From Mobula birostris (lineage: Eukaryota): a stretch of DNA of 64,000 bases. The stretch is from contig NC_092379.1 in NCBI RefSeq assembly GCF_030028105.1, positions 28,575,821 to 28,639,820 on the forward strand, read 5' to 3'. The notes under the pieces were generated by a model. It made no database searches and had not been told where the DNA came from. It was given only the letters and a program-made list of their open reading frames with translations. The position numbers were made by a program, and so were the translations under genes. How positions within the stretch are numbered: the first letter of the stretch is position 1; each line of letters opens with the position of its first letter. Shown piece after piece: positions 3,280-62,741 of this stretch.

Positions 3280-4086
3280 GGTGTCTAATTTCTTGTCGGA
3301 TTGACCGGCAGACTCCTTCCAGGTCGCAAATATCACTTAGCAGTTACTGTTGTGTGGCATCGTTGAAGCGGTTTTACTATGTGTGACAGCGGGAACGTTT
3401 CCCTGGTTAAAGAATTCGCGAAAACTAAGAACCGTGCCTTTCTGAGCGTCAGTCAGAATCCGCTTTGTTTCCATTCGTCATTCTGGATTTTTTTTTTCCG
3501 CTCAGTCAAGGCCCCGCGTCCACCCCCCGCCCTATCCCGTCTCTCTGTCTCTCTTTCTCTCTGTCTCACACTCTCTCTTTCTCAGTGTGCCCAAATGCCT
3601 CTGCCCCCTGTTCTCTGCATAATCACAGCATATTCACATACTTATCGATGTGTAATCCAAATCAAATATGAAGTTCACCTGGTCATTTCGTCGTCTCCGT
3701 CAATATTACGCTGGAAGTATTTATTTATTCATTCGTTTATTTAGTCAGTAATTTGGAGATATATCCCACAATTGTCACTTAGATCAACATTTATCAGTCT
3801 TCCGGCATTGAACTAGTTATTCAATGCCAGCAAGTGTTCATCTGGTTGTTCCCTAATCTTTGTTGGCTGTTAGGGAGCCAATCTCCTATCCACGCCAATA
3901 GACTCCTGACATCACCCTTTATGCAGCCACCACTCCTTTCGTTAAAAAAAAAAATAAAATAAACTCACATCTGTCAGTCCCCTTGTAATTTTTCCCATCG
4001 CCTTAAAATATCTGCCTCTCGCATAACCTATTTCCACCATTAGGTTGCCCATTCTATCTTGCCTCTTGTCATATTATAGATACATA

Positions 4087-4270
4087 GGGGTGTATGGGGT
4101 GTCAGGGAGAGGTAGCACCTCTGGTGGGGGAAAATGTCGCCGCCTTTTCAGGGCGGTTAGTCCACCTTTGGTCCCCACCTGGCACTCAGCTCTCACCTGT
4201 GGCTCCCAGTAGCTGTTTGCATGCGGCCACACCCCGAGCAACGGCTTCGACAAGCCGGCTAATCCAGGTG
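4087..4270 (+). ncRNA. Candidate HDV-like self-cleaving ribozyme
   Basis: P1 GGGGTGT (4087-4093 or 4096-4102) pairs ACACCCC (4229-4235). P2 CACCTG (4194-4199) pairs CAGGTG (4265-4270). P3 GGC (4201-4203) pairs GCC (4226-4228). L3 starts TCC. GAGCAA follows P1. P4 CGGCT pairs AGCCG. J4/2 is GCTAA with C at 4259. Confidence 0.6.
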
Positions 4271-4647
4271 AAGGTAGCCGACGGGTCTCAAACCCTCGGT
4301 GAGATAGGGAGTTGTCTATCCCAGCATGTGAAGACAGACTCTGGCGGATTGAGCGGACGAGACCAATGAAAGGTCCAACGGTCAAGAAGGCGGTCTCTGC
4401 AAGCGTCGTGGAACGTGTACAGCAGGACAAGACACAGAAGGCATCCTGGTCATCCACTGCGCCTAGTCCCATCTCCAGCCGTCTAGACTCTGTCTTGCCA
4501 CTGGATCGAGATGGGAATTGGGAAGAAAGAGTGAGGCTGACGCTGCGCCACTCTCCCTCACTTAAATCCAGATCACGCGCGAGTCTTGACACCATCATAA
4601 TGGTGTCGAGGTCCTCATCGACGTCAACGATGGACGAACAACCAACC
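4087..4647 (+). mobile_element. Non-autonomous RTE-like retroelement (5'UTR plus 3' tail) with target-site duplication
   Basis: ACATA(G) direct repeats at 4082-4087 and 4648-4653, and a (CAAC)n-like tail at the 3' end. It interrupts an older CR1 remnant that is uninterrupted in the paralogous modules near 10080 and 43790. The RTE assignment comes from recalled 5'UTR similarity, not a search. Confidence 0.7.
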
Positions 4648-5889
4648 ACATAGTAATTACCTAACCCCTCATCTTCCGTCTTTTCAAAAAAAAAAGGCAC
4701 TTGTTCTCAGAAACTGAGATGTCCCGGGAAATATCCATGCGCTTGCGGTGTGCAACTGAACTTCAGCATTCGTCCTCCTTTAGTCGTCAATGCAGAGAGC
4801 TTAATCCTTCCCAAACAATTCTACAAAAGAAGGACAAAATGACTGAACATCCATTGCTCCTGCTGCACCTGCAAGACACCCACTGTATATTCGCCCAATG
4901 ATTCACCGGGCAACACAGTCCATATAATCAGAAAGAATCAAGGAAGCACATGGTGTCCCCTTTCACGCGCGATCTAAATCCAGATTACATACAAGAAGCT
5001 AATACCACAAATTTGAAAGAATGCTATCAGTTACGCTGCACCCTTCATTTTGTGTAAAACCTGCGAACATTGCTCTGCTAAATGGGAATTGAACCGGGGA
5101 AGGCACAGCCTGTTTAGCCACCGATCTGACTGGAACTACTACACTCTGTTTAGTTCTATATTTCTGTTCTACTTGTCGATTTCAACCCTCATCTCTTCGT
5201 TCCTTCTTTCTCCTATATTTCCGTCCTTGTGTCACTCAATCGTCCTCTGACTACCTGTATATTCCAATCTCCACTGATTCTAAATCATCAATGTAGATTT
5301 TAACTAGTTGTGGGGACATAGTTTAATCCAATTCCAGTCCACTCGGGATTCATTTTAAATCCGAAAGATAAACATCCATTTAACTCCTCTTTGAGGAAGC
5401 TAATGTTAAATGACGCCACCTGAAAATTATCTTCATCTAAGCATTTAGTGTTATAGCTAATAGGATGCTGTCTGGTCATATACACCCTCAGTATCTCCAG
5501 GTTGCACTCAGTGTCACTGCTAATCCGTCAAAGTAGTGAAAAATGATGTCTAACAAAAAATAAAATAGCCACAAGGTATTGTTATAGGCAAGAAAGAGCG
5601 ACATGGTCACCGAATTGTAGTGGAAGTGTTCCGGATAAATGCCACTATATCCCTAGGTAAAGCTAAATTTAAGAAGTGTTTCACAAACTTGAGTGTTTAT
5701 CATTGCTGAACTGTTGCATTTATTATCCTTTCAATTATTGTGTTGCTTGTTTCTTTAATAAAACTTTCTTAGATCTAGTAATCCAGACTCCAACTGAGTG
5801 ATCCATTTCTGCTGGTTTGGCAACCCAGTTACGGGGTACGTAACAGGGTCAATATCACAAATGACCCGACTTGGTCCAACTAAGCAGAG

Positions 5890-6585: not shown

Positions 6586-8756
6586 AATGGGAGAGATTAC
6601 TGCCGATTCCCTGTTAGGGATATCGGTATGAAAAGAATACTTAATATTGACTGTAACATCGAAATAGTGACTGCTGACTCTTCTCTCGCTTTTGAACGAG
6701 TCATATCAGTCTCTCATTTATTAGTGAGAGAGAGAGAATGCTTGTGAAACGATGAAATGTTGCAGTAAACAGCTAGCTTTTGTTGTACTGTAGACCAAAC
6801 CCCTCTTTGTGTTTGTGGTTGTTTCGATGGTGGTTGGTGGTGGGCATTCTGATGCGTTATGCTAGAATAAGTGAGAGATGTAGATGCTGGTCAGGTTAAT
6901 GCTGCTTATCGCTGATTGTTCGAGGGATGTGGCAGGGGACTTTTAGGATTTTATCTTTTTTCAGATATTGATCCTTTGTGTTTTTATTCTGTTTTACGGA
7001 TGTCTGTGGAGAGTGTAAATTTCAGGTTGTGTATTTTGTACCTCTTTGATTTTAAGCAGAGCAATTGAAGCAAGCTGGGTATTCGTTTCGCTGTACCCTG
7101 GTACAACTGACGACAGCAAATATATAATATGCATAAACCAGTTTGATGTAACTGTGAGCGTCTGCAAAGTGAAAGAATATATCAGGCTGTCCTTGATTAG
7201 TTCATAGAAAATGGGTTGAGCCGGAAAGTGGCGGCGATGGTGGTGGTGGACTGCAGAGAACCTATCATGACACCCTGGCATTATCTGGTATCATGTCCCA
7301 GGGATTCGGTTCGACTTAGGTTTTCAGTTTCCACAATTCCCGAGTTGCTATATTTTCCACTACCCAAAAAAAGAAGACGCTCTTGGTAGCATGTGCTCGT
7401 GATCGGAGGGTCAGTGAATGTACATGTTAAGAGAAATTTGGGAAATTGGACAGATAAATCAGTTGACAATAAGACCATAAGATATTGGAACCGAAGTAGG
7501 CCATTTAGCTTGTCGAGTCAGCTACGCTATTTCGGAACTGAAGGTGTCGTGATGGAATTATTCGATACACTATACATATAATTAAAAAGAGGTTTTCAAA
7601 AAGTCGAGATGTACCTTTGGAAATAGATGATATCAGTTTGTGTTCTTTCGACAGTAACCGGACGTTCTCACTGTTTGTCTCTTCCATCGGTGGGAAAACA
7701 CAGAGTTCACAAAACAAGCTCCAATGAAACAACAATAGACTATTACCACATTCAAGGGTATTAAACTGTAGGATGAAATTGAATCGTAATCTTGGTATGA
7801 CCTTGCTCTTTATGTCCTGCCTGCGCTGCATTTTTATACGTCTGCTACAGTTTATTTCTGTATTCTTTTATTGATTTACTTTGTACTACCTCGATAATAT
7901 GTGTAGTGAATTCATCTGTATAAAAAGAATCAATGCAATGATGCGACAATAATTAACAAATTCCGTTTTCAATTTAGATATGTAGCAAAATACTACACGT
8001 GGTGATAACATCGGATCCGTTAAATCCGATTGGGAAACTAGATTATACTAGCAATCAATCTGTTGTGATCCCATTCCCTCTCTCTTTCTTCGCTCGCTTT
8101 TATACTGAAAATGCCTTCAAAAATATGAATCTCGGGGTAGTATGCGGTCACGTATATGTACTTTAATCATAAATTTAATTCAAACATTGAACCTTTTTCT
8201 CACAGCTTGAGAATGCAACGACCAAAATAGTATCTGCTTTCTCCAACACGATAAGCATTCGCAATTCTGCCGAATTATCTAAGTACTCCGCATAAATACA
8301 ATATCAATACAATGTAGCTGCTGCAACATCCTTAATTTCAGTAGCATGTCACTTGCAAGTATTTGTCAATTTGAAAGCGACCAATGTTCACACCCTCTGT
8401 TTTCCTTTATTCAGCCATTGTTCCATTTAACTATTTTTCAGTTCCAAACCATCATCGTTCTTTCACACTGCAGATACTTGAACAAAGACGATGTCAGACA
8501 AGGCTGTCCATCGTGTTATGTCGTTGCAGCAAAAGATGGTGGATGATTGCAAATTCTGGTATCCCAGAAAGTTATACAGCTCAGTTTGTGTCCGCTTTGT
8601 AATCAGGAACTGCACCTTTACCTTCGGCACCTTCTGCTGCTGATAGCAGCGCTCTTCCGTAGGGCACGTGACTGTGACTGATTTCTGGGTGCGCCCTCTG
8701 CAGATTCCTCAGAAAAAGGCGCCCTCCAGTGAGAGCTTTTTGCAATATACAGAAGC

Positions 8757-8795
8757 AGTTTTTGCACGGACCCGCCGTCCCCATATAACAGTGTG
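8757..8795 (-). other. 23-RSS
   Basis: Heptamer CACACTG (8795-8789), 23-bp spacer, nonamer GCAAAAACT (8765-8757). Confidence 0.93.
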
Positions 8796-9218
8796 GTGCT
8801 CATTGCACAGAGATACATGGCAGAGTCCGACACAAGAGCTTCACGGATATTCAATTGAGACGTCTTGCTGCCTTTCTGTAAAGTAGCAGTAATCCTCTCT
8901 GAATACCGCTGCGTTCTTGCTGTGCTATATAGCTTCAGCAAATAATTTGGAGGTCTTGCAGTATGTTGAATGTACCAAAAGATATATGCATCACTATAGG
9001 TGTAACTACAGTTCAGCGTTATGTTCTGTCCTTCCTCAGTCGTTACATCGGGAGGATCCTGCGTCACTGAATCTTTCCCACTCGTTCCTGCAAGAAAGGA
9101 CAGAATATATCAACAACGCTGGCTTGTATAGAATGCCGGGCAAACTCGCTAGCCAGCTTCGCTGAGACTCACCAGGCAGCACAGCCAATGCAATCAGCAA
9201 TGAACAGAGGGAAATCAT
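8796..9218 (-). CDS. TRAV: TCR alpha/delta V gene segment, apparently functional (family A variant)
   Basis: Leader 9218-9173 MISLCSLLIALAVLP, GT-AG intron 9172-9088, open V exon 9087-8796: GTSGKDSVTQDPPDVTTEEGQNITLNCSYTYSDAYIFWYIQHTARPPNYLLKLYSTARTQRYSERITATLQKGSKTSQLNIREALVSDSAMYLCAMS. Cys23, Trp41 and Cys104 are present, followed by a 23-RSS. Alpha versus delta use cannot be told from the sequence. Confidence 0.92.
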
Positions 9219-60593: not shown

Positions 60594-62458
60594 GCTGTCT
60601 GCATTACAATCAATAATAGGGTTTTATGAAATTGTTACTGGAGAGAAGGTAACAGGTTCAGTTCAGGGGCAGAAGGGACTCAGGTGGACCTAGAAAGAAT
60701 GTCTTTCGCAACTCATGTGTCACTTACTTAAGGTGTAGGATTATGGAATCAATCATTACAATTATGTGTTCACAGAATCTCTCAGTTTCCCACTCATGAT
60801 CCCTCTCGGCGATCTTCTTCTTGTAGTTTGAATCTTTCCCACACTGGCCCTCCTTGCCTTGTTTCTGTCCCGTTGTTAACTTCTCACCTGTTTATCACTC
60901 TTTTCTCCTTTCTTTTTCCCCTTCTCTTTTCCTTTCACAGTTTTATTATCCCTCTCTTTTATCCAATTTGCTTTTGCTTTCTTTATTCTGCTCCCTCTCT
61001 CTCTCACACACACATACGTGCACACACACATTCTCTCTCTCTACCTCTCTCTCTCTCTCTCTCACTCTCACTCTCACTCTCCCTCTCTATCGCTCGTTTG
61101 CTCTGTGCCACATGCGAGTACACATCTTGTAGAATAAAGATTATACGATGTTGAAATTCTGAAAGAGGTTGTTTACTTGTGAGGTGCCTGGAGACAATGC
61201 AGCGATTAATATCACGTAGTCAAATTGTGGGATATGTGCAGACAGCCGAACATTGGATGCTGATGTTAGAGAATGAAGATGATACCTGGAGTGGCGAAAT
61301 GGCCTGTTCTTTCTCCTCTTGCTAATGATCGTTACGCTGTAACTCATCCTGGTAACTTTGGTTAACAGTTCAGAAATTTGATCGGCTCAGCTCATTTTCT
61401 CAGTAAACAGAGCAGAAAGCATTGTGACAATAGTCAAGGGCAAAAACGAGGTCTTCGTTCTTGTGTGGTTCCGGATTTAAAAGGAAAATGGACTCCTTCT
61501 CTACGAAGCACTTTAACGGAAGCTTCATTCGGAGTGCAGTGGCTCTCCTTGGAGCAGATGGTTCAGCAGCTTCGGTGTTTATAGTGCTGAAGATGCTGTC
61601 TGCCAAAAATAAAAACATATCGATTGAACAGTTTTCATCTGTGTTGCAGAGAGAAGGATAAGCATTATTGGACATATAAAGTTTGGATGTGGCTTACACA
61701 GTGGAGCGAGGACACTTCTCCTGGCAAAAGCAGCCGGGGTATTGAGACTTCGATAGGATTGAGAGACATTGCCTTCAGAATGTGGGCTGAATATGGTGGA
61801 ATCAGAACAGGAAAGGTAGGGAACCTGCGACCAGATAGGCGATGGCTAACGGGAAGCTGGGGGGAGCGGGGTAAATAGATTATCAAGAGGAGATGGGAGT
61901 AGGAGTGGACAGAAAATAATTCACGGGGGGGGGTGGAGCGGGTTGGATGGGAGGGACTTTCTGAGGGGACTTACGATAATCGGAATGAGAGAATGGGAAC
62001 GGGATTGCCGGAACATTTGAACATTGGGAAATAAAACTTAATAAAGTCGTTTTGCAAATACCCCATGGGAAAATACAATGCAGTCCTTCCGTTTGCATTT
62101 TGCCTAGCCCTGTTGTTGGTGGAAGCCGGCAAGGTCCGACGCTCCATTTATATAAAAACGCTATCCTTTTGTGCATCTTTCGGTCATCCTCCCCTTCGAG
62201 TTCGAAACTGTAAGCAAATAAAGAAAAGCAGTAAGCAACGTCTTTTCTGAATATAGGAGTCGGGTGTTCAATCTCTCGTCCCCTAACGGTGTTGTCTTCA
62301 TAGGGCTCTCTGCTGGGAAGGTGTGAAGGTGCCTGAGTTTCGTGACTGGGCCCACTTTGATGTGGAGGATAGGTTGAGGGAACCCTCTGGTATGAGAGCT
62401 CACTGCAGTCAGGATATATATTTTTTGTCCAGATCCGCCTGCATCTTCAAAATCTGTG

Positions 62459-62741
62459 GGCTGATTTGTGCAAAGATACAGCACAGAAACCCACAGAAGA
62501 ACTCCAGAGAGAATTTCCTGCACTGGAAATCCGACATCCTAACAGGGTTGTCTTCAGTCCGAGCCACGTGTGCAAGGATGAACATTGTATTATTTTTTTT
62601 TTCTAAAGGTTCCACGATGTTGATTGATCCACAGATAAGCAATGGCAATTCCTGAGTGACTTCAGCTCAGCGAAATGCTCTGTCCTTCTTAATTAAATAA
62701 TTCCTTTCGATGTTGCGTCAACTAATCCGCCCCGTTCGTAC
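62459..62741 (-). pseudogene. TCR V pseudogene with a recognisable 23-RSS
   Basis: Reads GTNGAD*LTQHRKELFN*EGQSISLS*SHSGIAIAYLWINQHRG...LYLCTNQ. RSS is CACAGAT (62458-62452), a 23-bp spacer and ACAAAAAAT (62428-62420). The leader region is replaced by CR1. Confidence 0.85.

Follow-up and report, generated by a model that had tools for sequence, protein, structure and literature searches.

A candidate HDV-like self-cleaving ribozyme at the 5′ end of a short, very high-copy retroposon of rays

HDV-like ribozymes are established at the exact 5′ junction of RTE, baggins and other non-LTR elements (PMC6765202, PMC3774820), and as far as RTE 5′ regions are concerned we agree with the first-pass annotation of this DNA, which took them as the precedent for a candidate ribozyme at positions 4087-4270 of the window, i.e., the whole stretch of 64,000 nt from Mobula birostris that was analyzed (it includes 165 N). 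The question raised by this locus is whether these letters are the self-cleaving head of a mobile element, and whether the copy in the window or the family to which it belongs carries the complete fold. In the model that we favor, and consider probable, the region 4087-4274 is the 5′ head of a ray retroposon, the family majority form of which has all the parts of an HDV-like self-cleaving ribozyme and would cleave itself free.

The insertion was delimited by direct reading and by contig depth. The whole retroposon copy spans positions 4087-4647 of the forward strand (561 nt) and consists of the ribozyme-like head and a tail (4280-4647, same strand) with no recognizable protein domain. It is flanked by a target-site duplication (TSD), read directly as 5′-ACATA-3′ at 4082-4086 and at 4648-4652, which may be 6 bp long, ACATA(G), since G4087 matches G4653 too. 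The 3′ end of the retroposon, just before the TSD, is AACCAACC, with no poly(A). No second copy of the 4087-4647 element was found elsewhere in the 64,000-nt window. The element and its flanks were then compared with Logan contigs from four DNA runs of four organisms. The summed contig depth rose at 4087 from ~10 to ~1e5 (~10,000-fold; the repeat depth begins in the bin 4078-4103) and dropped back at ~4650, and loose contig ends were located at 4087 and at 4640-4642. The match ended exactly at 4087 in 106 contigs of run X2 and 101 contigs of run X9, the letters upstream being AT-rich and unrelated, and upstream of this point the agreement of the contigs with the window copy was 0.38-0.39 in these two runs. 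Because so many contigs quit matching exactly there, next to unrelated upstream letters, G4087 is the 5′ boundary of the family; the 3′ limit of family homology was found at ~4640-4642, after which a short AACC-type repeat follows. The family is a short, non-coding retroposon of rays, and a very high-copy repeat common to several species.

A descriptor scan found the nested double pseudoknot, in the order P1, P2, P3, L3, P3′, P1′, P1.1, P4 and P2′, at 4087-4270 of the forward strand, and direct reading bore out the helices and motifs that the first-pass annotation had placed there, both in their order and in their coordinates. The 5′ strand of P1, GGGGUGU (4087-4093), forms seven Watson-Crick pairs with ACACCCC (4229-4235), which directly abuts the GCC of P3. 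This first P1 strand had been said to start at the TSD junction, and it does, because 4087 is both nucleotide 1 of the TSD-flanked element and the family 5′ boundary. P1 begins with a G at the predicted cleavage site, which would lie immediately 5′ of G4087, and its basal pair is G-C. The repetition of the P1 strand, also noticed at first pass, was seen both by direct reading and in the descriptor scan (GGGGUGU, 4096-4102). J1/2 is a variable insert of ~96 nt (4094-4189), a length that had been regarded as unusual; it is not, since the silkmoth R2 ribozymes have a J1/2 of 216-498 nt (PMC3774820). A partial internal duplication of the start of P2-P3-L3 was observed inside J1/2, at 4164-4177 as compared with 4194-4208 (CACCUUUGG-UCCCC and CACCUGUGGCUCCC, respectively).

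The 5′ strand of P2 (4190-4199, with the core CACCUG at 4194-4199) pairs with 4265-4274, i.e., CAGGUG (4265-4270) followed by AAGG, which is AGGG in the family. A second possible P2 partner, CACCUGG at 4176-4182, had also been proposed; it is indeed present in the sequence, but it was rejected, because it is broken at 2-3 positions in each of the three other full-length copies (L001, L002 and L007, described below). P3 is formed by GGC (4201-4203) and GCC (4226-4228), and between these strands lies an L3 of 22 nt (4204-4225) that begins with UCCCAG. The 3′ strand of P1.1 together with J1/4 reads GAGCAA (4236-4241), and is followed by the P4 hairpin, CGGCUU/AAGCCG with the loop CGAC (4242-4257), which was predicted in the minimum-free-energy fold, and by J4/2, GCUAAUC (4258-4264), with the candidate catalytic C at 4259.

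The window copy differs from the family majority at several of these positions. P1.1 has a single pair only in the window copy, due to a C4205-A4237 mismatch. The G-to-A change at 4237, already suspected at first pass of weakening P1.1, proved to be a private mutation of the window copy: G makes up ~99% of the depth in all four runs and is present in L001, L002 and L007, so that GAGCAA becomes GGGCAA and the second P1.1 pair is restored. At 4272 the family has G in place of A (~99% of the depth); the C4192-A4272 mismatch, which among the four full-length copies is confined to the window copy, is then gone, and P2 reaches 10 bp (CUCUCACCUG with CAGGUGAGGG). Thus, both helix mismatches of the window copy (4237 and 4272) are private mutations. 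At 4263 the family has A in place of T (~99% of the depth), by which J4/2 becomes GCUAAA, and at 4208 C is the family majority (~43-70% of the depth, depending on the run), by which the start of L3 becomes UCCCCG. None of the modelled pairs is broken by the majority differences. The parts of the family form are a P1 of 7 bp with its start on nucleotide 1 of the element, a variable J1/2 of ~100 nt, a P2 of 6-10 bp, a P3 of 3 bp, an L3 with UCC(C/U)CG and a 5-bp hairpin, two C-G pairs in P1.1, GGGCAA, P4, and a J4/2 GCUAAA with the candidate catalytic C. The private changes of the window copy, i.e., G-to-A at 4237, the A at 4208, a 6-nt deletion in L3 and the C-A mismatch at 4272, would be expected to weaken or abolish cleavage. 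Because these four private defects are located in or next to the active site, the window copy is most likely inactive, and we consider it a mutated, decayed and probably dead member of the family.

Other copies were recovered by a word-based protein search with the spurious ORFs that cross the element, and their DNA was taken from the corresponding contigs of public assemblies. The full-length 5′ set consists of four copies, namely the window copy, L001, L002 and L007 (L006 and L007 are one locus seen in two runs), and in L001, L002 and L007 the element opens with this GGGGUGU, the flanking letters before it being unrelated. L003, L004 and L005 are old, decayed or 5′-truncated, so that little can be learned about selection from the pairs broken in them; an alternative P1 in the 5′-truncated L004 was dropped, since this copy is heavily decayed and has a ~21-nt deletion across L3 and P3′. 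Two peculiarities of the full-length copies were also observed. L007 (60-110, forward strand) carries a 14-nt insertion in J1/2 and lies directly after a (TA)n microsatellite. In L002 (405-602, reverse strand) the family homology stops right after the ribozyme-like head (at the equivalent of 4279) and unrelated AT-rich sequence follows, so that L002 either consists of the head alone or is a hybrid in which a different tail has been joined to it.

As judged from the four full-length copies, the pairing of the model is well kept. The 5′ strand of P1 is the same in all four, and 27/28 P1 cells, 38/40 P2 cells and 12/12 P3 cells are paired; in the P3 of L007 one G-C pair is replaced by G-U. P2 shows a compensatory swap, from U-A to A-U, at pair 4198-4266 in L002; a competing simple stem between 4198-4204 and 4225-4231 is also possible, but the L002 swap breaks that stem and keeps P2. 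The first five pairs of P4 are kept in the four copies, a U-A pair having become U-G in three of them, and P1.1 is broken in the window copy only. The unpaired letters are kept as well: L3 starts with UCCCCG, UCCUCG or UCCUAG in the three other copies, J1/4 is GGGCAA in 3/3 of them, and C4259 is invariant in 4/4. In total, 93.7% of the cells are paired, versus 34-49% when the partners are slid by 1-3 columns. The mean identity among the four copies is 100% in P1 and 86% in the core (4190-4279), but 61%, with indels, in J1/2 (4094-4189). Mutations that accumulate once a copy has inserted should be spread evenly over its segments, and this contrast therefore suggests that P1 and the core were under constraint in the source lineages.

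A GC-rich repeat may also contain, by chance, stretches that can be arranged into an HDV fold on paper, and a relaxed structural descriptor is indeed easily satisfied: it finds 2.3 chance loci per 128 kb of dinucleotide-shuffled window sequence, so that a match is not significant alone. The sole other match of the relaxed descriptor in the window (62349-62583, forward strand) is located in unrelated AT-rich sequence and is devoid of the CAA of J1/4; as a second ribozyme it was discarded and taken as chance, because the J1/4 motif is absent and ~2 such matches per window are expected. The folding energy is likewise ordinary (z = -1.35 and -0.79 for the two copies folded) and therefore uninformative, the minimum-free-energy fold being closed by P1 in both. 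When the CAA in J1/4 is also required, however, the expectation falls to 0.135 chance loci per window, and with a strict descriptor (both P1.1 pairs plus CAA) the head of L002 passes and nothing else does in 90 kb of the loci of the other copies. The strongest argument against chance is the position: nucleotides 1-7 of the element find a complement without any mismatch in the 7 nt that separate P3′ from the G of P1.1, which at a fixed position would occur about once in 16,000. The start of P1 and the 5′ end of the family fall on one and the same nucleotide. That both helix mismatches are private to the window copy, that the core is conserved while J1/2 drifts, and that P2 carries a compensatory swap also speak against a chance resemblance, which these results make unlikely; we give it very little credit.

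Since GGGGUGU is present twice, the ribozyme could be real and yet use the second strand (4096-4102) as its P1, in which case the cut would fall 5′ of G4096, and the first strand would be a leftover or a regulatory competitor. In the window copy and in L002 both strands pair equally well with 4229-4235, in keeping with this explanation. Nevertheless, 4087 and not 4096 is the starting point of the four full-length copies and of over 100 contigs per run, and L001 and L007 have the second GGGGUGU in degenerate form only, while the first shows no variation. It is because of these two observations that the first GGGGUGU can be tied to the 5′ end, and cleavage at G4096 seems highly improbable. We therefore retain the register in which the P1 of the putative ribozyme starts at G4087.

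The short L3 of about 7-8 nt that closes the active site in HDV-like ribozymes is not found here: L3 measures 22 nt in the window copy and 27-28 nt in the other full-length copies, ~3x the usual length. The first-pass annotation had called the 22 nt unusual. The length stands, and what was added is its explanation, namely a family 5-bp hairpin inside L3, the 3′ arm of which was lost from the window copy by the 6-nt deletion. Contigs that read through L3 carry 6 letters more than the window copy; the match of many other contigs ends at 4223-4225, where they read ...ACAGCGGCCACACCCC. In L001, L002 and L007 there are 5-6 extra bases, (G)ACAG(C/A), following GCAUGC (i.e., after 4224), and these bases pair with the GCUGU arm that the window copy retains at 4212-4216. 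The internal hairpin thus has 4-5 bp in these three copies and 5 bp in the family. The first 8 nt of L3 resemble a normal L3, and in the family the 5-bp hairpin then follows. No peripheral element like this hairpin was found for HDV-like ribozymes in the literature searched.

Alternatively, the head could be a structured 5′ region, conserved and similar to the HDV fold, that does not cut. Its uniform 5′ end would then come from the start of transcription, and its conservation from promoter function, from an interaction with the reverse transcriptase, or from a contribution to translation or stability. Besides the long L3, three further observations are in keeping with this explanation. First, neither at the gathering score nor at E<=10 did the Rfam HDV-type models (HDV, CPEB3 and drz) match any of the three copies searched, namely the window copy, L001 and L002. 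A miss was to be expected because of the 100-nt J1/2, the 22-28-nt L3 and pseudoknots that are not modelled, but it still counts as a failed test. Second, covariation among copies, which the first-pass annotation had proposed as a check, came to the one P2 swap and some G-U changes and was formally not significant: with the four full-length copies there was one double change, which was equalled in 143/500 shuffles, and with six copies, i.e., after the addition of decayed ones, there were five double changes, equalled in 30/500 shuffles. Most of the modelled pairs never vary among the copies. Third, the ribozyme-like 5′ regions of R2 have also been reported to bind the protein of the element (PMC6765202).

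Against a non-cutting head, the unpaired letters that are conserved are those expected at an HDV active site, namely UCC(C/U)CG, GGGCAA and GC(U/A)AAA with the invariant C. Moreover, P1 starts exactly at nucleotide 1, and no known polymerase III head was found: a search of the element for a tRNA-, 5S- or 7SL-like head gave none at E<=10. A promoter, finally, would not require that nucleotides 1-7 can pair with the 7 nt that separate P3′ from P1.1. We regard a non-cutting structured head as rather improbable, although it deserves more weight than chance or the second register, and a self-cleaving head remains our preferred reading. Searches for the core motifs by exact pattern in public viral contigs and metagenome contigs did not find them.

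The tail was analyzed for traces of the machinery on which such an element would depend. No Pfam family was found in the tail ORF (4312-4650), and no reverse transcriptase was detected with Pfam in the ORFs of the element or of the loci of the other copies; Pfam matches in two L001 ORFs were taken for low-complexity noise, as they do not pass in any single stretch. An exhaustive HMMER search with the tail ORF gave 16 proteins, mostly short ORFs from other repeat copies, and in the eight of them analyzed with Pfam, both long ones included, no reverse transcriptase was found. The tail motif was not found in the literature searched. The 3′ end has a short simple repeat and no poly(A), as is the case for RTE-type elements; this fit is suggestive of, and no proof for, the RTE-type origin named at first pass. 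With its head and its non-coding tail the element may have a make-up like that of the short internally deleted elements (SIDEs), in which a 5′ ribozyme is combined with a LINE 3′ end devoid of coding capacity, i.e., the deletion derivatives with a ribozyme plus a tail that are known for R2 (PMC3414825).

In the Logan contigs joints were observed between 4223 and 4297-4299, and common letters preceded 4422 and 4163. In each run, hundreds of contigs have a different sequence in common upstream of 4163 and downstream of 4223, and some of them resume at 4297-4299 or at ~4422. The joints are those of mosaic subfamilies that differ in J1/2 and in the segment from P4 to P2′; in one subfamily 4224-4296 is replaced, so that its P4, J4/2 and P2′ have other letters. 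Longer relatives that share the sequence from 4422 onward probably exist, and the parent LINE is possibly among these mosaic relatives. A more far-reaching proposal, which we put forward tentatively and consider doubtful as a whole, is that the family ribozyme is an active HDV-like variant with a hairpin on the 3′ side of L3, that the duplicated P1 strand would provide a spare register or a switch, and that the head would be a mobile module recombined onto different tails. The module part of this proposal draws on L002, in which the head alone is present, and on the subfamily joints at 4163, 4223 and 4297. If the family head does cleave, the L3 hairpin would show how much insertion the active-site loop of HDV tolerates.

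How such a family would spread can be outlined as follows. Without a promoter-like head of its own, the element would be transcribed as part of longer RNAs, of host or read-through origin. Self-cleavage immediately 5′ of G4087 would next set the 5′ end of the element RNA, and a partner LINE, itself autonomous, would supply the reverse transcriptase that recognizes the tail and copies the RNA into new sites. Such a sequence of events would account for independent copies that begin at the same G beside unrelated flanks. If the family head does cleave, ribozyme-terminated non-LTR retroposons would extend to the cartilaginous fishes, and a short non-coding element would have reached a very high copy number by means of a ribozyme instead of a polymerase III promoter.

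At the locus itself the outcome is of a more practical kind. An ORF at 8621-9067 (reverse strand), ~4 kb from the retroposon copy, encodes an immunoglobulin V-set domain (Pfam E = 2e-14), and the copy therefore sits in a cluster of antigen-receptor V segments. It is probably a dead insertion between such segments, and no functional gene element. Two 'uncharacterized proteins' in NCBI, P0001 from Mobula birostris and P0002 from M. hypostoma (206 and 224 aa, respectively), show 67-72% identity with what the antisense strand of the repeat would encode, and are probably gene-model artefacts on repeat copies. Hence, what follows here is a matter of annotation: a repeat copy, together with suspect Mobula protein models.

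A close precedent is provided by the RTE and baggins elements, at the 5′ ends of which HDV-like ribozymes were reportedly described by Ruminski et al. in 2011 (summarized in PMC6765202 and PMC3774820). As in these elements, the ray family has a nested double pseudoknot at its extreme 5′ end, with a predicted cut that coincides with the 5′ junction of the element, and, as would also apply to the ray family, they lack a promoter of their own and depend on co-transcription. The ray family differs in its host, a cartilaginous fish, and in the hairpin inserted in its L3. No report of ribozymes in elasmobranchs was found in the literature searched.

The genomic HDV ribozyme has a G-U wobble at the base of P1, GGGCAAC in J1/4 and GCC/GGC in P3. 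The order of the helices is the same in the ray family, L3 starts alike, with UCCUCG (L002) or UCCCCG (the family majority), J1/4 is GGGCAAC, and the candidate catalytic C is followed by purines before P2′. In contrast to HDV, J1/2 is ~100 nt long, L3 has 22-28 nt and includes a hairpin, the basal pair of P1 is G-C and not G-U, and P3 is GGC/GCC and not GCC/GGC. The L1Tc ribozyme of Trypanosoma cruzi is also HDV-like, is located at the 5′ end of a dispersed LINE and frees the element from longer transcripts (PMC6765202), which is the role proposed here for the ray head; L1Tc belongs, however, to another clade and another host, and its fold is compact.

With the R2 ribozyme and the R2 SIDEs the ray family shares what would be a non-autonomous organization, in which a 5′ ribozyme is combined with a 3′ end that the reverse transcriptase of a partner would recognize. 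In both cases J1/2 is long and variable, P3, L3 and P1.1 are conserved, and the letters of the active site are near those of HDV. On the other hand, R2 is specific for 28S rDNA and rare, whereas the ray family is dispersed and very high-copy, and the R2 ribozymes have an L3 of normal length. Four features set the ray family apart from these systems, namely its hosts, the very large number of its copies, the additional hairpin in L3 and a P1 strand that occurs twice.
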